The notes: generated from the letters alone by a model not told the origin. A DNA stretch of 64,000 nt from Pseudomonas aeruginosa PAO1 (GCF_000006765.1 NC_002516.2), one strand, 5' to 3'. Positions 1 to 12,102 are shown, counted from the first letter of the stretch. Translations and numbers: made by a program.

Positions 1-490
1 CGCCTGGCGCCGACCCTTCGCCCTGCTCGACCGCTGCGGCGGCTGGAGCGCCGACCTGTCCCTGCGACTGTTCCTGGCCTGGGAGTTCTTCGAGTCCGGT
101 TGGGAAAAGTGGAACGGCGAGAACTGGTTCGGCGATATCCAGTCGGCTTTCCCCTTTCCCTTCGACCGCCTGCCCGCCGCCTTCAACTGGGAACTGTCGC
201 TGTGGGCCGAACTGCTCGGCGCGCTGTTCCTCCTGCTCGGCCTCGGTACCCGCCTGACCGCCCTGGTGCTGATCGTCGTCACCCTGGTGGCGACCGCCGC
301 CGTACACTGGCCGGCGGAGTGGTCGAGCCTGGCGGAACTGGCCCGCGGCTACTCGATCACCGACCACGGCTTCGGCAATTTCAAGCTCCCGGCGATCTAC
401 CTGGCGGCGCTGCTGCCGCTGCTGTTGGCGGGGGCGGGGAAGCTGAGCCTGGACCACTGGCTCGGGCGGCGCCTGGGCCTGTCCCGCTAG
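1..490 (+). CDS. DoxX-family membrane protein (HvfX/BufD-like), 5'-truncated by the window (frame starts at base 2)
   Basis: Frame 2 is open from the window start to TAG at 488-490: [17 protein letters not shown]...[20 protein letters not shown]...VHW...[12 protein letters not shown], the DoxX/SURF4 pattern. Confidence 0.9.
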
Positions 491-742: not shown

Positions 743-1498
743 TCATCCGCCCGCCCAATCGCGTTCCAGGGTTCCGAGCACGACACCCTGGGTCCGCAAC
801 GCTGCCAGCAACTCCAGCCCCGCCGCGTCGAGCGCTCCGGGCGCACTCCGCGCCTCGAGCGCCAGCGCCGCCAGGTGCTCGCGCCCGCTCAGGCGCCGTC
901 TCGCCAGCGACTCCAGCAGGCGGCAGGCCAGCGGAGTCAGGCGCGCGGTATGCACGCGATGCGAGGAATCGCGGTGCATCAACAGCAGGGTCGGTTCCGC
1001 AGGCGCTTCGGCGAGCGCGACGTCCTCTTCGAGCCGATGCACCGGCCAGCGATAGCCCAGCGGCAGCGCCAGGCTCGACAGCAGCGGCACCCCGTCGAGC
1101 AGGTCGCCTTCACGCCGATACGGCGGATCGTCGGGCTCGGCCAGGTAGAGGCGCGTTTCGCTCCATTCGAAGTGGGCCAACTCGGCTTGCCACGCCGGCC
1201 GATACTCGCCCCGCTGCCGCAGGTAGTCGACGAAGACCCCGGCGATACGGGTGAACAGGGGGGTATGGCTTCTCTCCTCGCGATAGAACTCGCGCACCAG
1301 GCCATGCCACTGCTGCTCGCCAAGCAGCCCGCGCAAGCGCGGGAAGCCGCTGGCAAGGAGGCCTTCGATGGCGTTGTAGAACAGCTCGCGGTAGACCCGC
1401 AGGCGACGTTCTTCGATGTCCGGCGGCGGCGCATTGCCAAGCGGGTCGCGCAGGTGCCGGGCGAGGCTGAACTGCTGTTGGCGCAGGCGCTCATCCAT
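743..1498 (-). CDS. DUF2063 / HvfC-BufC-type MNIO partner protein (RiPP recognition)
   Basis: 251 aa; [22 protein letters not shown] and ELAHFEW motifs; overlaps the DUF692 gene by 8 bp. Confidence 0.85.
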
Positions 1499-2321
1499 GA
1501 CGGCGTCCCTCGTCGCGTTGCCATTGGCGGATCTGCTCCACTTCCAGCAGCAGTTCGCCCAGCGGCGGATAGTTGAAGTCCCGCTCGAGCAGGGTCGGGC
1601 GCACGCCGAAGCGACGATAGGCGGCTCCGAGCAAGGCCCAGACGCCGGGCTTCACGGCGGCACCATGGGTGTCGATCTTCAGGTCCGGCGCCTCGTCGTA
1701 GTGCCCCGCCACATGGTAGGCGGCGACCCGCCCGGGCGGCAGCCGGACGAGGAAGTCGAGGGCGTCGTAGCCGTGGTTGCAGGCGTTGACGAACAGGTTG
1801 TTGACGTCCAGCAACAGGTCGCAGTCGGCCTCGTCGAGTACCGCGTTGACGAACTCGATCTCGCTCATCTCCCGGTACGGCGCTGCATAGTAGGAAATGT
1901 TCTCCACCGCGATGCGCCGCTCCAGGCGCTCCTGCGCCTCGCGGATGCGCGCCGCGACGTGACGCACCGCGGCCTCGGTGAACGGCAGCGGCAACAGATC
2001 ATAGAGATGGCCATCGTCGGAACAGTAGCTGAGGTGCTCGCTGTACAACGCGACCCGGTGGCGGACGAGGAAGCGTCGGGTCTGCTCGATAAAGGCGGCA
2101 TCCAGCGGCGTGGAGCCGCCGAGGGACAGCGAGAGACCGTGACAGGTCAGTGGAATGCGCTCCACCAGGCGCTCCAGGTCGGCACCGAAGGCACCGCCGA
2201 CGCCGATCCAGTTGTCCGGCGCGCATTCGAGGAAGTCCACCGCGCCGGGCGCCATCGCCAGCAGTTGCGGAAGCAGGCCGCGCCTCAGGCCGAGGCCGGC
2301 GGCGTTGTCGATCAGGGTCAT
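1491..2321 (-). CDS. DUF692 multinuclear non-heme iron oxidase (MNIO; HvfB/BufB/MbnB superfamily)
   Basis: 276 aa; GLGLR start, [36 protein letters not shown] and LLERD metal-ligand motifs all present. Confidence 0.95.
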
Positions 2322-2338: not shown

Positions 2339-2380
2339 GGCGACGCCCCCGCTTTCCCAGGGGAAAGAGAGGGCGCCGCC
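2339..2380 (-). other. Intra-operon RNA stem-loop between efhP and the MNIO gene
   Basis: On the minus strand, GGCGGCGCCC pairs with GGGCGUCGCC (one G-U) around an inner CUUUCCC/GGGAAAG stem; no U-tract. Confidence 0.65.
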
Positions 2381-2395
2381 AGGGTGTGGAAAGGC

Positions 2396-2863
2396 TCAGT
2401 GCTGGCCTTGCTCCAGCTTGCTGAACAGCCCGGCGGGCATCGGCTTGCCGTTGGCCTCGTAGGTCTTGCGCAGGTGTTCGTAGGCCTCGGCTTCGGAAAT
2501 GAAGCCGTCATGGTCGCTATCGATGCTGTCGAACTCACCGGCACGGTCCTTGGCCACCGCGAGGAACTCGGCGCGCGAGACCTTGCCATCGTGATCGGTG
2601 TCGGTTCGGGCAAAGGAGGCGTCGCCGCACTTGCCCTCCCCGCACTTGCCCTCGGCGCCGGCCTTGGCCGGGGTCTTCGCGGAGCCGCCGCTACCACACT
2701 TGCCTTCTCCGCACTTGCCTTCGCCGGCGCTCGCCGCCGCCACTTGCAGCCCCTGGCCCAGCGGCTCGACGGCGAACGCCGAACCGCCGAGCAGCATTCC
2801 CCCCACCAGTACGGCACCGAGCAGGCTGGCGGAAGTCTTTTGACGCGAATCGAAAACGGACAT
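2396..2863 (-). CDS. efhP: EfhP: Sec-signal protein with 4 EGKCG motifs and 2 EF-hands
   Basis: ATG at 2863 with GGAGAAGAAGC RBS; 155 aa; signal ending GSAFA; [10 protein letters not shown] at 2693-2722 and 2624-2653; EF loops [12 protein letters not shown] (2567-2602) and [12 protein letters not shown] (2486-2521). The provided ORF from 3118 is over-extended. Confidence 0.92.
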
Positions 2864-2995
2864 GCTTCTTCTCCACAGTAAACGCGGCCGGGCCGCAGGC
2901 GCGGCGCTGGTGGGCGCCGGTACGAACCGGGCGGCGGGACCTTCTGGGGTCGTCCCGGGCGCCGCGGTTCGGATGTGGCCATTTCGCCTGGGAGA

Positions 2996-3073
2996 TGTAT
3001 CGGGGGTGTATCGCCCGACACGTGGATTTGTACGCCGGAGGTATCGAAACCGCGCATGGATACAAAGCGATAC
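2996..3073. promoter_or_regulatory. Tandem GATAC(A) repeats, candidate OmpR-family (BfmR-like) sites
   Basis: Minus strand GATACACCCCCGATACA (2996-3012, 11-bp period); plus strand GATACAAAGCGATAC (3059-3073, 10-bp period); lies in the efhP / HD-GYP divergent gap. Confidence 0.55.
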
Positions 3074-3186: not shown

Positions 3187-4431
3187 GTGCTGAAACGCAT
3201 TCCGGTAACCCAGCTTCGCCTCGGTATGTTCGTCCAGAGCCTTTGCGGCTCGTGGCTGGACCACCCGTTCTGGAAAAGAGGTGGCTTCCTGCTCGACAGC
3301 CAGGCCGACCTGCAGCGCCTGCGCGAAAGCGCCGTGAAGGAGGTCTGGATCGATGCCAGCAAGGGCCTCGACCTCCCGGAGGAAGCGGCGGTCTCGGCCG
3401 CTGCGGTCCTGCCGGTCACCATGCCGGCCGGCCCTTCGCCGGCGCGGGTCGCCCTGGAGGAGGAAATCCGCCACGCCGCCCTGCTCTGCAGCCGTGCCAA
3501 GGCCGCCGTGGTCAGCATGTTCCGCGACGCGCGCATGGGCCAGGCCATCGATACCGCGCATGCATCGGACCTGGTGGACGAAATCTCCGCCTCGGTGCTG
3601 CGCCATCCCAACGCGCTGCTCAGCCTGGTACGGCTGAAGACCTCGGATGAATACACCTACATGCATTCGGTGGCGGTCTGTGCGCTGATGATCGCCCTCG
3701 CCCGCCAGCTCGAACTGCCCGACCCGCTGGTACGCGAGGCGGGGCTGGCCGGACTGCTGCACGACATCGGCAAGATGGCGGTGCCCGATCCGATCCTGAA
3801 CAAGCCCGGCAAGCTCACCGACCCGGAGTTCGGCCTGGTTCGCCGGCATCCGCAGAACGGCGCGCGGATGCTGCTCGATTGCCGCCAGGTCAGCGCCCTG
3901 GTGGTGGATGTCTGCCTGCACCACCACGAGCGCATCGACGGCACCGGCTACCCCTTCGGCCTGGCGCAGGAGCAGATCAGCCTGCTGGCGCGAATGGGCG
4001 CGGTGTGCGACGTCTACGACGCGATCACCTCCGACCGTCCCTACAAGAAGGGCTGGAACGCCGCCGAGGCGATCCGACGCATGGCCGAATGGAACGGGCA
4101 CTTCGACCCGCAGGTGTTCCGCGCCTTCGTCAAGGCGGTGGGCATCTACCCGGTCGGCGCGCTGGTCAGGCTGGAAAGCGGGCGCCTCGGCGTGGTCCTC
4201 GAACAACACGGCCGCTCGCTGCTGACGCCACGGGTCAAGGTATTCTTCTCGGCCCGCTCGAAGGTGCCGATCCCGCAGCAGGTGGTAGACCTGGGTAGGG
4301 CCGGACAGACCGACCGAATCGTCGGCTTCGAGCCGGCGGAAGCCTGGAACTTCCGCAATCTCGACGAGATGTGGACGGGACTGGCCAAGTCCACGGGCTC
4401 TTATTTCGACGCGGGAACCGGAAATCCGTAG
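3187..4431 (+). CDS. HD-GYP c-di-GMP phosphodiesterase with N-terminal DUF3391
   Basis: 414 aa, GTG start; YTYMHS, HDIGK, HHERIDGTGYP and CDVYDAITSDRPYK motifs. Confidence 0.95.
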   Translation: MLKRIPVTQLRLGMFVQSLCGSWLDHPFWKRGGFLLDSQADLQRLRESAVKEVWIDASKGLDLPEEAAVSAAAVLPVTMPAGPSPARVALEEEIRHAALLCSRAKAAVVSMFRDARMGQAIDTAHASDLVDEISASVLRHPNALLSLVRLKTSDEYTYMHSVAVCALMIALARQLELPDPLVREAGLAGLLHDIGKMAVPDPILNKPGKLTDPEFGLVRRHPQNGARMLLDCRQVSALVVDVCLHHHERIDGTGYPFGLAQEQISLLARMGAVCDVYDAITSDRPYKKGWNAAEAIRRMAEWNGHFDPQVFRAFVKAVGIYPVGALVRLESGRLGVVLEQHGRSLLTPRVKVFFSARSKVPIPQQVVDLGRAGQTDRIVGFEPAEAWNFRNLDEMWTGLAKSTGSYFDAGTGNP

Positions 4432-4464
4432 ACGCCTTCCGCCCGCAAGCCGAGCACCGCTCCC

Positions 4465-4495
4465 GTAGGGCGCATAACGCGAAGCGTTATCCGCC
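4465..4495 (+). repeat. REP element
   Basis: GTAGGGCGCATAACGCGAAGCGTTATCCGCC. Confidence 0.85.
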
Positions 4496-4989
4496 GTTTC
4501 GCCGCAATCTCCGCCTGCTCCGCGTTGCTTTAAGCGCACCATCGTCGATACTGCTGGCAATCCGCCGACAGTTTTCAAGAGGCCATATGAGTCCGCTCCT
4601 GGAGACAATCGAAGAGCACAGCAGAAATGGCTGTGCTCCATCCAAAGCGTTGATTGCCCTGTGGTCCGCAGGCGCCGACCTGAGGGTTTCCCCGAGGAAG
4701 GCTGGCCGCCTATGCGAACTTGCCGTCGTTGCCGCAGCAGGGAAAGCAGGCATGCTCGAGAGCGAGATCGTTGCGGCACGCCGGGCCTATGCCGCCAGCC
4801 TGGGAGTGACGCTTAGCGGAGCGATCAGCAACGCCGACGAGCCGGTCCATATCCGCCACGCCGTCAGCAATTCCAATCACAACCCCAACGCCTCAAACCG
4901 TATCAACCTTGGGAGGGCCCGAGCGTATAAAAAAAGGCGCGAGGAAGGTGATTACTTCTTCATCGACACTTGAATCGCCTGCATAACCG

Positions 4990-5880
4990 TTATCTCCCCC
5001 GCGCCTCAACGGCAGCCATCTCCAGCAACCACCCCCGGAACGCCAGCATCGCGCTGGTCTCCCCCCGCGACTGCAAGCGCGTCAGCCAGTAGCTGCCGGT
5101 ACTCACTTCGGTGGCGAACGGACGCCGGATGCTCTCGCTGGCCAGTTGCCGGGCAAACATCGCCGCCGGCGCCAGGGCCACGCCGACACCCTGGCGGGCC
5201 GCCTCGAGCATGGCCAGCGAGGTGTCGAAGACGATGCTCCGGGTCAGTGGCGCGTGCGCCGGCAGTCCGGCCGCCTGGAACCACAGCGGCCACTCGTCGG
5301 CGCGGTAGGAGCGCAGCAGGGTGTGCTGCAGCAGGTCGGCGGGACTGTGCAACTGGGCGGCGACCTCCGGGCAGCAGAGCACCGTCAGCGGCGCCTCGAA
5401 CAACGCCAGCGCCTCGGTGCCGTGCCAGGCGCCGCCGCCGAAGCGGATCGCGTAGTCGAGCCCCTCGGCGGCGATGTCGACGCGGTTGTTGTGGGTGGAC
5501 AGGCGCAGATCGATGAAGGGATGGCGCGCCTGGAAGTCCTCCAGCCGCGGCAGCAGCCAACCGACCGTGAAGGTTCCGACCGCGCCGACGGTGAGCACGT
5601 CCCGGTAGTGGCCACCCTCGAAACGTTCCAGCAGGCCGGCGATGCGGTCGAAGGAGTCACACAGCACCGGCAGCAGGCTCTCGCCCTCGTGGGTCAGCAT
5701 GAGGCCGCGCGGCAGACGCTTGAACAGGGCCACGCCGAGACGCTCCTCGAGGCTCTTCACCTGGTGGCTGACCGCCGCCTGGGTCACGCACAGCTCGATG
5801 GCCGCGCGGGTGAAGCTCAGGTGCCGGGCCGAAGCTTCGAAGGCGCGCAGGGCGTTCAGCGGCAAATGGGGTCGAACCAA
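4990..5880 (-). CDS. ampR: LysR-family regulator AmpR
   Basis: (M)VRPHLPLNALRAFEASARHLSF...VTQAAVSHQVK. TTG start at 5880 preceded by GGAG gives 296 aa; divergent from ampC. Confidence 0.97.
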   Translation of the reverse strand: MVRPHLPLNALRAFEASARHLSFTRAAIELCVTQAAVSHQVKSLEERLGVALFKRLPRGLMLTHEGESLLPVLCDSFDRIAGLLERFEGGHYRDVLTVGAVGTFTVGWLLPRLEDFQARHPFIDLRLSTHNNRVDIAAEGLDYAIRFGGGAWHGTEALALFEAPLTVLCCPEVAAQLHSPADLLQHTLLRSYRADEWPLWFQAAGLPAHAPLTRSIVFDTSLAMLEAARQGVGVALAPAAMFARQLASESIRRPFATEVSTGSYWLTRLQSRGETSAMLAFRGWLLEMAAVEARGR

Positions 5881-5882
5881 TC

Positions 5883-5896
5883 TCTGCTCCAAATTT
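5883..5896 (+). promoter_or_regulatory. AmpR-binding box
   Basis: TCTGCTCCAAATTT in the ampR-ampC gap matches the AmpR box as I recall it. Confidence 0.65.
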
Positions 5897-5902
5897 TTCT
5901 AA

Positions 5903-7222
<1,320 letters not shown>

Positions 7223-7848: not shown

Positions 7849-10800
7849 TCAGCTCGCCGACTCCGCCTGCACGTCGCCGAACATCGCCTGCAGGCGGAGC
7901 AGGCAGGCATCGCACAGGGTGCGCAGTTCGTCGAGGCGGATGCCGGCGAGGATTTCCATGCCGCGCAGCGGATCGGCGCGGCGCAGGGCCTGCTCCAGCT
8001 CGCTGGCACGGCCGGCCAGGGCGCTGGCGCCAACGGTGGAAGCGCTGCCCTTGATGGTATGCAGGGTCGCGGCGCTGCCCTGGACATCGCCCTCGCCGAG
8101 CTGGCGTTCGAGCTGGGCGAAGAGGTCCTGCATGTCCGGAACGAAGCGCCGCAACACCTGGACGATCAGCTCCAGGCTGCCGCCGAAACGCCCGACGATA
8201 TCGCCCCGCGCCTCGACCAGTTCGCCCGCGTCCGCTGCCGTTGCCGGCGCGCCCCTGGCGCCGCTCCTGCCGAGATGACCGAGCAGGCAAAGCACCAGGC
8301 GCTCCTTGTCGATCGGCTTCGCCACATGGTCGTTCATGCCCGCCGCCAGGCAGGCTTCGCGGTCGGCCAGCGAGGCGTTGGCGGTCATGGCCAGGATCGG
8401 CAGCCCGGCGAAGCGCCCGTCGGCGCGGATTCTCCGGGTCGCCTCGAGACCATCGATATCCGGCATCTGCATGTCCATCAGCACCGCGTCGAACGGCACG
8501 CTCGCCTCCAGCACCTGCTGAACGCCCGCCAGCCCGCCGTCGGCGAGGGCCACCCGGGCGCCCTCGCTGCTCAACAGCTCGGCGGCGACCTGGCGGTTCA
8601 GCGCGTTGTCCTCCACTACCAGCAGACGCACGCCCCGCAACCGCTGGGTGCGCTCCACCGGGCGCGGCGGCGGGTTGGCCGGGGCGCCCTGTTCGCCGTG
8701 CAACGCATGCAGCACCGAGTCGGCCAGTTGCTTGGGCGTGACCGGCTTGGTGAGAAAATCGACGAAGGGCGGCGCGCTGTGGTCGCGCGCATCGGCCAGC
8801 ACCTCGCGGCCATAGGCGGTGATCATGATCACCATGGGCGGCGGCAGGTCGCCCTGCAACTGGCGGATCAGTTGCGCCGCGCTGAGGCCGTCGAGATCGG
8901 GCATGCGCCAATCCATCAGCACCACGTCGTAGCGACGGCCCTCGGCCATCGCCGCCTGGACCCGCGCCACCGCCTCGCTGCCGCTGCCGACGCAGTCGGC
9001 GCGCCAGCCGAGGGCGCCGACCGTGCGTTCGAGCAGCTCGCCGGCCACCAGGTTGTCGTCCGCCACCAGCAGCCGCAGCGGTTCGCCGGCCCCGGGGCAG
9101 GCCGCACGCAGCGGTTGGTCGTGGGCGACGTCGAGGTCCAGGTCGAACCAGAACCGGCTACCGCTGCCCGGCGCGCTCTCGACCCGCAATTCACCGCCCA
9201 TCAGGTCGACCAGGCGTTTGCATATGAACAGGCCGAGGCCGGTGCCGCCGAAGCGTCGCGAGGTGGACGCCTCGGCCTGGGTGAAACCTTCGAAGATGCG
9301 CTGCTGCTGTTCCGCGCTGATGCCGATGCCGGTGTCCGCCACCAGCACCCGCAGGCGCACCAGGTGGGCGTCGTGCGCCAGACGCCGCAAGCTCACCAGG
9401 ACGTGCCCGCGGGCGGTGAACTTCAGTGCGTTGCCGGCCAGGTTGATGAGGATCTGCTGCAGGCGCAGGCGGTCGCCGACCACCGCGCTGGGCAGCTCGG
9501 GATCGATGTCGAAGATCACCTCGACGTCCTTGTCGCCCTGGTTGCCGGAGAGCACCACGGCCAGGTCCTGCATCAGCGGCTCCAGCTCGAAGGGGAGCAT
9601 TTCCAGGACCAGTTTGCCGGCCTCGATCTTCGAGTAGTCGAGGATGTCGTTGAGCAGGCCGAGCAACGAGGTTGCCGCCGAGCTGGCCTTGTCCAGGTAG
9701 TCGCGCTGGCGTTCGTTGAGATCGGTCTGCCGGGCCAGTTGCAGCATGCCCAGCACGGCATTCATCGGCGTGCGGATCTCGTGGCTCATGTTCGCCAGGA
9801 ACGACGACTTCGCCGCGCTGGCGGCGTCCGCCTGCTCCTTGGCCTCGCGCAGGCGCGCCTGCAGTTGCTGGTCGCTGGTGATATCGATATTGATCCCGGT
9901 GACCTGCAGCGGGTTGCCGTCGGCGTCGCGCTCGACCTGCGCGCCGGCCTGGATGAAGCGGATGCCGCCGTCGGGCAGCACCACGCGGAAGATCACATCG
10001 TAGTTGCCGCGCCCCTCCACCGCCGCGCGCAGGCTGGCCTCGGTGCGCTCGAGGTCTTCCGGATGCAGGCGGCTGCGCCAATGCTCGTAGACCAGGCCGC
10101 CGTCGCGCAACGCCAGCGGCTGGCCATACATCTCGCACATGCGCTCGTTCCACTGCAGGCTGTCGTCGGCCAGGTTCCAGCGCCAGATGCCCAGGCGCGC
10201 CACGTCGGCGGCCATTTGCAACTGGTCGCGCGCCGCGGCCATCTCGCGCTCGGCGTTGCGCCATTCGGTGACATCGACGGCGATGCCCAGGTAGCCGTTG
10301 ATCGCCCCAGCCTCGTCGCGCAGGACGGTAACCGAAAGCGTCACGCTGAGCGGCGAGCCGTCCTTGCGCAGATAGGTCCATTCGCGGGTCTCGGCGCCCT
10401 CCTGTTCGGCCCGCGCCACCAGCACGCGGAAACCCTCCTCGCCCAGCTCCTGGCCGCGGGCGAGCAACTCCCGCTCGCTGTGCAGCAGGGTCGGCGAGGC
10501 CTTGCCGACCACCTCGTCGGCGCGGTAGCCGAGCATCCGCTCGGCACCGAGATTGAAGCCGCTGATGATGCCATCGCGGTCGAGGGTGATGATCGACACC
10601 TCGGACGCCGCCTGCAGCACGCTGCCGAGCAGTACGTTCAACCGACGCAGTTCGGCGGTACGCTCGGCGATCTGGTGCTCCAGGCCGGTATTGAGTTCGC
10701 GGATGCGGGCCTCGGCGGCCTTCTTCGCGGAGATGTCGCGTACGGTCTTCGAGGCGCCGACCACGCCGCCGTCCGGACCGAGGATCGGCGAGACGGTCAC

Positions 10801-12102
10801 CGCCACGTCGAGCAGGTGGCCATCCTGGTGCCGGCGCACGGTATCGAAGCTGACCACCTGTTCTTTACGGGCGATGCGGGCGAGGATGTCGAGTTCCTCG
10901 TTCTCCTTGGATGGCGGCACCAGCAGGTCCACCACCCGCCGCCCGACCGCCTGCTCCTCGCGGTAGCCGAACAACGCCTCGGCCCCGCGATTCCAGTCGC
11001 TGATGACGCCGTCGAGGCCGACGCCGATGATGCCGTCCGCCGAATTGCCGACGATCGCCGCCAGCCGCGCCTGGGTCGCCGCCTCCCGACGCCGGCGCAG
11101 GCGGCCGAGGGCGCTGGCGTTGACCAGCGCCGCCAGCAACAGGCTGACCAGGCTGCCGGCCAGGAACAGGATGCGCGGCGAAGGCTGGTGCAGGCGCTGG
11201 ACGAACAGCGGCAGTGCGCTGAACGCCATCTGCCAGTGCCGACCGTAGATCTCCCGCCGCAGCATGTGGCCGAACAGCCGTTGAGCCGGCGCTGCGGCGC
11301 CGTTGACGAAGAAGGGCACGGCAGCGCCGTCGCCGGTGACGTCGCTGAGTTCGAGGTGGATCGCCGCGTTGTCGATGGGCAACCCGGCCAGCACCTCGCC
11401 GGTCAGCAGCGGCGCATAGCTCCAGCCGAAGCCTTCGAGTTCGCGCTGGGGCCCCGGCGGTGGAGTGATGCCGCTGCGGTAGATCGGCATCAGGATGAGG
11501 AACGATTGCTGGCGCAAGCCGCTGGCCTGGACCAGGGTGATCGGCCCCGTCAGGCGCACCTGCCCGGTCTCCAGGGCGGCGCGGGCGGCCTCCCGGCGAT
11601 TGGCTTCCGAGGCGATGTCCAGGCCCAACGCCTGGCCGTTGCGCGCCACCGGCTCGATGTACTGGATGACGTAGCGCTCGCCATCGTGCGGAGTCAGTTG
11701 CTGGATGCGGAACTCCGGCTGGCCGTCGGCCCGCGCCTGGCGCAGGAACCCGGCCTCGTCGGCGGCCGCCACCCGGCGTATGAAGCCGAAGCCGCGGGCG
11801 CCGGGAAACTCGCGGTCGATGTCGCGGGTCAGGCTGTAGCGGCGGAACAGTTCGCGGTCGATGTGCACCTCGCCCGCCGTCAGCAAGGCACCGCGCACCC
11901 CGCGCAAGCCATACTGGTAGAGTTCCACGCGGCGGGTCACCGCCTCGGCCAGCAGTTCCGCCTCGCGTTCCAGCGCCATCCGCGCCTGTTGCTCGTTGAC
12001 CAGCGCCAGCCCCCAGGCGCCCAGCCCGGACAGCAGCAGTCCGAGCGCCAGTGTCGCGCCCGCCCAGCGGCTCAGCCTGAACTTGCTCTGTTGTACGTTC
12101 AC
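7849..12102 (-). CDS. Hybrid sensor kinase CHASE-PAS x3-HisKA-HATPase-REC-REC-Hpt
   Basis: 1417 aa; two TM segments around CHASE (IQYIEP...ALGLDI); MSHEIRTPMN; DTGIGI and GTGLGL; two VLMD receiver motifs; Hpt HTIKGSA. Confidence 0.96.
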   Translation of the reverse strand: MNVQQSKFRLSRWAGATLALGLLLSGLGAWGLALVNEQQARMALEREAELLAEAVTRRVELYQYGLRGVRGALLTAGEVHIDRELFRRYSLTRDIDREFPGARGFGFIRRVAAADEAGFLRQARADGQPEFRIQQLTPHDGERYVIQYIEPVARNGQALGLDIASEANRREAARAALETGQVRLTGPITLVQASGLRQQSFLILMPIYRSGITPPPGPQRELEGFGWSYAPLLTGEVLAGLPIDNAAIHLELSDVTGDGAAVPFFVNGAAAPAQRLFGHMLRREIYGRHWQMAFSALPLFVQRLHQPSPRILFLAGSLVSLLLAALVNASALGRLRRRREAATQARLAAIVGNSADGIIGVGLDGVISDWNRGAEALFGYREEQAVGRRVVDLLVPPSKENEELDILARIARKEQVVSFDTVRRHQDGHLLDVAVTVSPILGPDGGVVGASKTVRDISAKKAAEARIRELNTGLEHQIAERTAELRRLNVLLGSVLQAASEVSIITLDRDGIISGFNLGAERMLGYRADEVVGKASPTLLHSERELLARGQELGEEGFRVLVARAEQEGAETREWTYLRKDGSPLSVTLSVTVLRDEAGAINGYLGIAVDVTEWRNAEREMAAARDQLQMAADVARLGIWRWNLADDSLQWNERMCEMYGQPLALRDGGLVYEHWRSRLHPEDLERTEASLRAAVEGRGNYDVIFRVVLPDGGIRFIQAGAQVERDADGNPLQVTGINIDITSDQQLQARLREAKEQADAASAAKSSFLANMSHEIRTPMNAVLGMLQLARQTDLNERQRDYLDKASSAATSLLGLLNDILDYSKIEAGKLVLEMLPFELEPLMQDLAVVLSGNQGDKDVEVIFDIDPELPSAVVGDRLRLQQILINLAGNALKFTARGHVLVSLRRLAHDAHLVRLRVLVADTGIGISAEQQQRIFEGFTQAEASTSRRFGGTGLGLFICKRLVDLMGGELRVESAPGSGSRFWFDLDLDVAHDQPLRAACPGAGEPLRLLVADDNLVAGELLERTVGALGWRADCVGSGSEAVARVQAAMAEGRRYDVVLMDWRMPDLDGLSAAQLIRQLQGDLPPPMVIMITAYGREVLADARDHSAPPFVDFLTKPVTPKQLADSVLHALHGEQGAPANPPPRPVERTQRLRGVRLLVVEDNALNRQVAAELLSSEGARVALADGGLAGVQQVLEASVPFDAVLMDMQMPDIDGLEATRRIRADGRFAGLPILAMTANASLADREACLAAGMNDHVAKPIDKERLVLCLLGHLGRSGARGAPATAADAGELVEARGDIVGRFGGSLELIVQVLRRFVPDMQDLFAQLERQLGEGDVQGSAATLHTIKGSASTVGASALAGRASELEQALRRADPLRGMEILAGIRLDELRTLCDACLLRLQAMFGDVQAESAS

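Follow-up and report, generated by a model that had tools for sequence, protein, structure and literature searches.

The window, the whole stretch of 64,000 nucleotides from Pseudomonas aeruginosa PAO1 that was analysed, carries on its minus strand a 155-codon open reading frame plus stop (2396..2863), which on translation runs from an ATG at 2863 to a TGA at 2398-2396. This gene is efhP (PA4107), encoding the known calcium sensor EfhP of P. aeruginosa PAO1, because the window contains exact matches to four primers published for efhP of PAO1, and a PDC beta-lactamase gene lies nearby; the original prediction had named the same protein. The closest database proteins come from P. aeruginosa and are 97-99% identical to the product. 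The reading frame, Pfam, NCBIfam and the primers together describe a 155-residue protein that joins an HvfA-type EGKCG precursor segment to an EF-hand pair. The domain order proposed at the outset (signal, two EGKCG motifs, linker, two further EGKCG motifs, two EF-hands) can be read directly in the sequence and is supported by NF050137 and Pfam matches above their cutoffs. The EGKCG and EF-hand content of EfhP was confirmed to lie far beyond chance.

Residues 1-31 (2771..2863, minus strand) form a putative Sec signal peptide or signal anchor, judged from the sequence and the homologue alignment. They comprise a basic n-region (R7, K9), a hydrophobic core from L14 to G27 and a final A29-F30-A31, followed by V32. 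Published predictions conflict here, with a cleaved Sec signal (SignalP 5) set against an uncleaved membrane anchor (Sarkisova 2014 and the accessible part of the 2025 survey). F30 and A31 are identical across 17 aligned homologues, an invariance that favours cleavage over anchoring. Behind the signal, the homologue alignment reveals a box with the consensus PLxQGY, represented in EfhP by EPLGQGLQ (residues 33-40; 2744..2767, minus strand), in which L35, Q37 and G38 are invariant among the 17 homologues. The box is common to fused and unfused EGKCG precursors and is present in the EGKCG-only proteins of loci L064 and L069. Truncations of HvfA have indicated that the N-region is dispensable for modification.

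The EGKCG motifs are arranged as two pairs, both delimited by the sequence, NF050137 and DNA repeats. Pair 1 spans residues 48-57 (2693..2722, minus strand) with Cys51 and Cys56, and pair 2 spans residues 71-80 (2624..2653, minus strand), preceded by A70, with Cys74 and Cys79. The single motifs occupy residues 48-52, 53-57, 71-75 and 76-80, residues 58-70 form the linker between the pairs, and the four cysteines named are the only ones in the protein. In the DNA, the motifs form two blocks of tandemly repeated 15-bp units, with 69 bp between the blocks. A70 together with pair 2 matches the HvfA repeat unit exactly, and E71-G80 is unchanged in the 17 homologues. EfhP scores 32.4 bits against NF050137 (KCGExKCG_twice; cutoff 19.5, E 5e-8) over two stretches. 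At the level of this domain (Buf_EGKCG), EfhP would thus belong to the HvfA-family EGKCG RiPP precursors.

The EF-hand pair covers residues 81-138 (2450..2623, minus strand), as delimited by Pfam, an AlphaFold2 model and Foldseek. Sequence and Pfam locate loop 1 at residues 88-99 (2567..2602) and loop 2 at residues 115-126 (2486..2521), both on the minus strand and at the positions given by Sarkisova 2014. Both are canonical 12-residue loops with D at position 1, G at 6, a hydrophobic residue at 8 and E at 12, and Pfam EF-hand_1, _5, _6 and _7 each exceed the gathering cutoff. In the AlphaFold2 model, built from an 80-sequence alignment, 10-residue blocks within residues 81-140 have a mean pLDDT of 77-88, which drops after residue 140, and residues 1-77 stay below 50 except for isolated residues. 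Helices are predicted at 81-87, 97-103, 108-114 and 124-138, and both loops include short strands. D81, the residue that follows Cys79-Gly80, opens helix E1, and the junction KCG-DASF-x-x-TD is invariant across 17 diverse homologues. The folded part of EfhP is predicted to be a compact paired helix-loop-helix, and the EGKCG segment is predicted to be intrinsically disordered. A Foldseek search of the PDB, used solely to confirm the fold class, returned calmodulin lobes and polcalcins with a probability of ~1.0 and a TM-score (target) of ~0.6, at E-values (at least 0.04) that are weak because half of the model is disordered. EfhP shares with these domains the canonical DxDxDG...E loops and the predicted paired fold, but unlike calmodulin it has a single lobe only.

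The two loops of EfhP are 15 residues apart, a spacing found identically in the sequence of locus L042, which has EGKCG motifs on both sides of the EF-hands; in calmodulin the corresponding spacing is ~24 residues. The 15-residue spacing recalls lanmodulin, which together with a related EF-hand protein gives the best PDB sequence matches of EfhP (E ~5e-4). Lanmodulin-like lanthanide binding was considered and rejected, as this match is weak and NF053806 reaches 21.8 bits against a cutoff of 135; the Ca2+ specificity of EfhP has been measured in published work. An assignment as a XopAW-type effector was likewise discarded, because the score against NF041410 (32.2 bits, cutoff 120) reflects generic EF-hand similarity.

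Downstream of efhP on the same strand lie hvfB (PA4106; 1491..2321), encoding an MNIO-type RiPP maturase (NCBIfam NF003818, 409.5 bits, cutoff 360; Pfam MbnB_TglH_ChrH, E 3e-99), and hvfC (PA4105; 743..1498), encoding its DUF2063/RRE partner (NCBIfam NF050145, 251.6 bits, cutoff 142; Pfam DUF2063 and NGO1945_C). The efhP stop codon is 74 bp from the hvfB start, and hvfB and hvfC overlap by 8 bp. PA4107-4106-4105 have been reported to form one operon (PMC4148453). A consensus scan between efhP and hvfB found no terminator or promoter, this consensus being uninformative for P. aeruginosa promoters; the single terminator-like match (2897-2883, minus strand), located ahead of the efhP start codon, is no better than expected by chance. 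The 3' part of a DoxX gene (PA4104; 1..490, plus strand; Pfam DoxX, 80.8 bits), cut by the window edge, is convergent with hvfC. On the other side, a divergent gene (3187..4431, plus strand) encodes a protein with the Pfam domains DUF3391 and HD_5 (HD-GYP-type).

The 323-bp region between efhP and the HD-GYP-type gene contains GATACAAAGC (3059..3068, plus strand), which matches the BfmR box reported in the literature (GATACAnnGC) and is situated 196-205 bp upstream of the efhP start. Two such matches occur in the window against 0.83 expected by chance, and the one at 3059-3068 lies within the EMSA fragment (-490..-131) that is shifted by BfmR (PMC4148453). The same study reported that BfmR binds the promoter of the PA4107 operon and co-regulates the DoxX gene PA4104, that PA4107-4105 and PA4103-4104 are induced more than 10-fold on deletion of bfmS, and that the BfmRS-induced PA4103-PA4107 cluster is raised in cystic fibrosis lungs (PMC4148453).

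Further along, an AmpR-like LysR-type regulator gene (4990-5892, minus strand; best match PenR, below its cutoff) and a divergent gene for a PDC-family class C beta-lactamase (6029-7222, plus strand; 940 bits, cutoff 865) are the chromosomal ampR-ampC pair of P. aeruginosa. The locus is the PA4104-PA4110 region of this species. Another gene of the window (7849-12102, minus strand) encodes a hybrid sensor histidine kinase of 1417 aa with PAS, kinase core and receiver domains, which scores below every NCBIfam equivalog cutoff. Many long spurious open reading frames overlap this gene on the opposite strand, as expected for high-GC DNA.

Within P. aeruginosa, efhP alleles encode one EGKCG motif (127 aa), two (132 or 145 aa), three (150 aa, arranged 1+2 or 2+1), four (155 aa, as in the window) or five (160 aa). 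These copy-number variants are proteins P0001-P0021, and the repeats are encoded at window positions 2610-2744. Several of the alleles come from complete genomes (6.3-7.1 Mb), and one 150-aa variant comes from a 325-contig assembly. The variation fits slippage of 15-bp units combined with a 69-bp deletion between the blocks, judging from the repeat pattern. Alleles with an odd number of motifs or a lone motif may be poor or partial MNIO substrates, because FonBC, which modifies the EGKCG peptide fontiphorin, requires two adjacent EGKCG repeats. Between species, the copy number ranges from 1 to ~10.

The fusion extends far beyond P. aeruginosa. A search of ~5.8 billion proteins gave 1524 clusters at E <= 1e-3, and among the best 120 of these, 119 have at least one EGKCG and all 120 have at least one strict EF-hand loop. 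A search of the representative full library served for architecture counting only; past its ~30 first matches it returned mostly generic multi-EF-hand proteins. In a one-genome-per-species collection, 277 loci contain a gene for a relative, and the best 80 of them were analysed. EGKCG/EF-hand fusions account for 69 of these 80 loci, a proportion that overstates the frequency of the fusion among all EGKCG precursors, since the loci were picked by similarity to EfhP. Directly downstream, hvfB-hvfC follow in 41 of the 69 fusion loci. Six lie too close to a contig end for a neighbour to be called, and 22 of the 63 informative 8-kb fusion loci have no MNIO gene within at least 1.5 kb downstream. 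The latter belong mostly to the P. fluorescens group, whose stand-alone fusions are L010, L014-L016, L018-L026, L029-L032, L034, L036, L037 and L040. Unrelated genes (FMN reductase, low-molecular-weight phosphatase, MCP, pyridine-nucleotide oxidoreductase) neighbour the fusion in L016 and L023. On a tree of 48 adjacent HvfB proteins, precursor architecture changes 8 times against a mean of 19.7 after shuffling, and none of 200 shuffles gave so low a number. The survey of EGKCG and EF-hand co-occurrence that the original prediction had suggested therefore shows that the fusion is not sporadic; on this tree, precursor architecture is inherited together with HvfB.

EF loop 1 follows the last KCG after a spacer of 7 residues in 38 loci and of 4 in another 22. 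The shorter spacer characterizes a sandwich form of the precursor, EGKCGn-EF-EF-EGKCGn, in which just 4 residues separate the last N-terminal KCG from EF loop 1. This form occurs in many Lysobacterales (Pseudoxanthomonas, Luteimonas, Lysobacter, Dokdonella, Tahibacter) and in a few Pseudomonas (L048, L052). The other sandwich loci are L041-L047, L049, L050, L053-L055, L057, L059, L060, L063, L065, L070, L071, L073 and L078. The gene matches at ~4001-4500 in most of these loci and is followed in most by hvfB-hvfC. The accessible part of the 2025 survey describes EGKCG motifs N-terminal to the EF-hands, and the sandwich form is without mention in that part.

The EGKCG/EF-hand fusion in EfhP is already published and annotated. 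A paper from the EfhP laboratory (mBio 2024) drew attention to the four EGKCG repeats, and the HvfA paper lists P. aeruginosa among the carriers of the operon. Orthologues are named "HvfA family oxazolone/thioamide-modified RiPP metallophore" in NCBI and UniRef. The premise that EGKCG precursors lack a folded Ca-binding domain, from which the original prediction started, finds no support: the accessible part of the 2025 survey describes a whole second type of Buf_EGKCG precursor with two EF-hands, predicts no structure for its EGKCG portion and names EfhP as an example of a possible role in copper and calcium. As described there, this type resembles EfhP in its short EGKCG domain without 17-residue repeats, its two EF-hand_5 domains and its N-terminal hydrophobic helix, and in a gene cluster with MNIO and DUF2063 (and DoxX). 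Dual-metal ideas are in print, for Ca/Fe (mBio 2024) and, in that part of the 2025 survey, for Cu and Ca. The EfhP of Sarkisova 2014, Kayastha 2022 and Burch-Konda 2024 is the same gene, with the same EF loop positions and the same neighbours (DUF692, DUF2063, HD-GYP protein, LysR regulator, PDC beta-lactamase), although the EGKCG repeats were read there as possible Fe sensors and not as MNIO substrates. What we add to this literature is small: the copy number of 1-5 within one species, the sandwich form in Lysobacterales, the PLxQGY box common to fused and unfused precursors and a possibly polar omega cassette in the published mutants.

A close counterpart is HvfA (oxazolin) of nontypeable Haemophilus influenzae, which shares with EfhP the repeat units, the order HvfB then HvfC and a DoxX gene nearby, and whose Sec signal has a putative equivalent in EfhP. 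It differs from EfhP in its length of 95 aa, its three repeat units and its N-terminal disulfide, and it lacks EF-hands; in P. aeruginosa the DoxX gene belongs to a separate convergent operon. Against the HvfA equivalog NF050188, EfhP reaches 24 bits, below the cutoff of 95. By these comparisons EfhP has the HvfA motif domain in common but is no orthologue in architecture. Fontiphorin (FonA/FonBC) and the 'captophorin' peptides also have the EGKCG pentamer and an MNIO with a PME1 partner, and for fontiphorin a double repeat is the minimal substrate. They differ in being pure repeat peptides; the words EF-hand and calcium do not occur in the fontiphorin paper. A relationship to the bufferin Buf1 was rejected, since EfhP has no DUF2282 match in Pfam and the adjacent MNIO scores 256 against the BufB cutoff of 310, while passing the HvfB model.

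Kayastha 2022 cloned 372 bp without the first 96 nt (residues 33-155) with a His-tag and expressed them in E. coli Tuner BL21(DE3) without PA4106 or PA4105. When HvfA was produced alone in another BL21 derivative, it carried disulfides only and was unmodified. The EfhP used for ITC, CD and NMR thus carried the EGKCG segment in a form that was almost certainly unmodified, because no MNIO was co-expressed, and the suggestion that earlier recombinant EfhP had been made without the MNIO is borne out. We found no paper stating explicitly that recombinant EfhP was unmodified. The Ca2+ Kd of 13.7 uM was measured on the unmodified recombinant protein, and Ca2+-induced pyocyanin production has been reported to require intact EF loops.

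Primer mapping shows that in the published efhP mutants a gentamicin omega fragment, located ahead of hvfB and hvfC within their operon, replaces window positions ~2404-2818, and that the complementing 0.52-kb fragment corresponds to window positions 2371-2891, that is, to efhP alone. The cassette may be polar on hvfB and hvfC. If it is, the complemented strains would make unmodified EfhP. Phenotypes that were fully restored (pyocyanin, alginate) would then be independent of modification, and those restored in part or not at all (H2O2 resistance, lettuce infection, biofilm) might need it.

We propose that EfhP is an exported protein of two modules, an MNIO-modified, Cu(I)-binding EGKCG core and a Ca2+-binding EF-hand pair, and we regard this as the probable reading of the locus. 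Module 1 (residues ~45-80) would be a disordered HvfA-type RiPP core with two double EGKCG units. In the cytoplasm, the co-transcribed HvfB (PA4106) and HvfC (PA4105) would oxidise its four cysteines to 5-thiooxazoles, with a mass change of -4 Da per Cys and -16 Da in total, and the modified EfhP would then leave the cytoplasm through Sec. Once in the periplasm, the heterocycles would act in pairs to bind Cu(I), probably up to ~2 Cu per protein. In module 2 (residues 81-138), one EF-hand pair resembling a calmodulin lobe would bind Ca2+ in the micromolar range and change conformation. The product would be one periplasmic or membrane-tethered protein combining a Cu(I)-chelating peptide with a Ca2+ sensor. 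A Kd of ~14 uM should leave the EF-hands mostly without bound Ca2+ in the cytoplasm, which would suit both HvfBC access and Sec export.

This proposal leans on the HvfA system. HvfBC modifies each Cys in the repeat units of H. influenzae HvfA, and a single repeat unit is enough for it to install two modifications, the signal and N-region not being needed. The products, first called oxazolone/thioamides, have now been reassigned as Cu(I)-binding 5-thiooxazoles. Oxidation of all four EfhP cysteines is the best-supported model, because two double units adjoin an HvfB and an HvfC recognized at equivalog level. The model is also favoured by the single operon, the conserved fusion, the invariant junction and the presence of a folded EF pair beside a disordered EGKCG segment. 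Modification of EfhP, its binding of Cu(I) and crosstalk between the modules are what we infer from these comparisons; in the literature searched to late 2026 there is no report of EfhP modification or Cu binding.

It is possible, though rather unlikely in our view, that EfhP is modified and its modules work independently, the EF pair serving as a Ca2+ buffer, a soluble carrier or a tether with no link between Cu and Ca2+. The AlphaFold2 model agrees with such independence, as does the accessible part of the 2025 survey, in that the EGKCG segment is predicted to be disordered and without confident contacts to the EF pair. Stochastic Cu binding and aggregation have been suggested for EGKCG products (fontiphorin paper). 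The variable copy number points the same way, and the 1-5 motifs in P. aeruginosa alleles argue against a precisely built metal site. However, the spacer from KCG to EF loop 1 is short and near-fixed, the DASF junction is invariant, EGKCG blocks flank the EF pair on both sides in Lysobacterales, and the long co-inheritance of fusion and MNIO suggests selection on the combination.

The thiooxazole/Cu(I) site and the EF-hands might also form a two-metal switch that would integrate host Cu and Ca2+ for virulence and iron uptake. The idea rests on Cys79, which lies two residues before helix E1, and on the clamping of the EF pair by EGKCG on both sides in Lysobacterales. Bridging of the heterocycles by Cu(I) could then alter the Ca2+ affinity or the Ca2+-induced hydrophobic exposure, or the reverse. 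We consider a switch of this kind improbable.

Equally doubtful is the view that the cysteines stay thiols and form an unmodified thiolate site (Fe/Fe-S, or low-affinity Cu(I) or Zn), the MNIO having another substrate or being irrelevant. EfhP has been proposed to sense both Ca and Fe by way of its four EGKCG cysteines, and Fe-uptake genes are under EfhP-dependent control (mBio 2024). Three further observations support this view and count against modification. Unmodified HvfA also binds 2-3 Cu(I). The 22 fusion loci without an adjacent MNIO gene suggest that modification may be dispensable or done in trans. Complementation with efhP alone restored several phenotypes, among them pyocyanin and alginate, in a mutant that is possibly polar. 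On the other hand, the arrangement of the genes (precursor-hvfB-hvfC), their joint regulation and the equivalog scores match characterised systems in which every EGKCG Cys is modified, the MNIO is missing from just 67 of 2583 genomes with Buf_EGKCG genes, and HvfB and precursor architecture are co-inherited.

It is very improbable that the EF-hand is a follower domain for biosynthesis or export (for recognition by HvfC, or for export competence at low Ca2+) that is later proteolysed to leave a short Cu peptide, for although mature EGKCG products may be either whole polypeptides or protease fragments (fontiphorin paper) and the Kd would keep the EF-hands mostly Ca-free in the cytoplasm, the repeat unit alone is sufficient for HvfBC, EF-loop mutants lose Ca2+-dependent phenotypes in vivo, which indicates that the domain functions in the mature protein, and stand-alone fusions persist where no MNIO is adjacent.

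To our knowledge, no EF-hand Ca2+ sensor other than EfhP has been described in P. aeruginosa, and EfhP has been tied to virulence and to the regulation of iron uptake. If its N-terminal half is a Cu-binding RiPP, the Kd and the conformational data in print were obtained on an immature protein, and some phenotypes may stem from copper handling and not from calcium sensing. The BfmRS-induced PA4103-PA4107 cluster would then be a copper and calcium module. Should the improbable two-metal switch prove true, some of what has been published on EfhP as a 'calcium sensor' would hinge on an overlooked modification.
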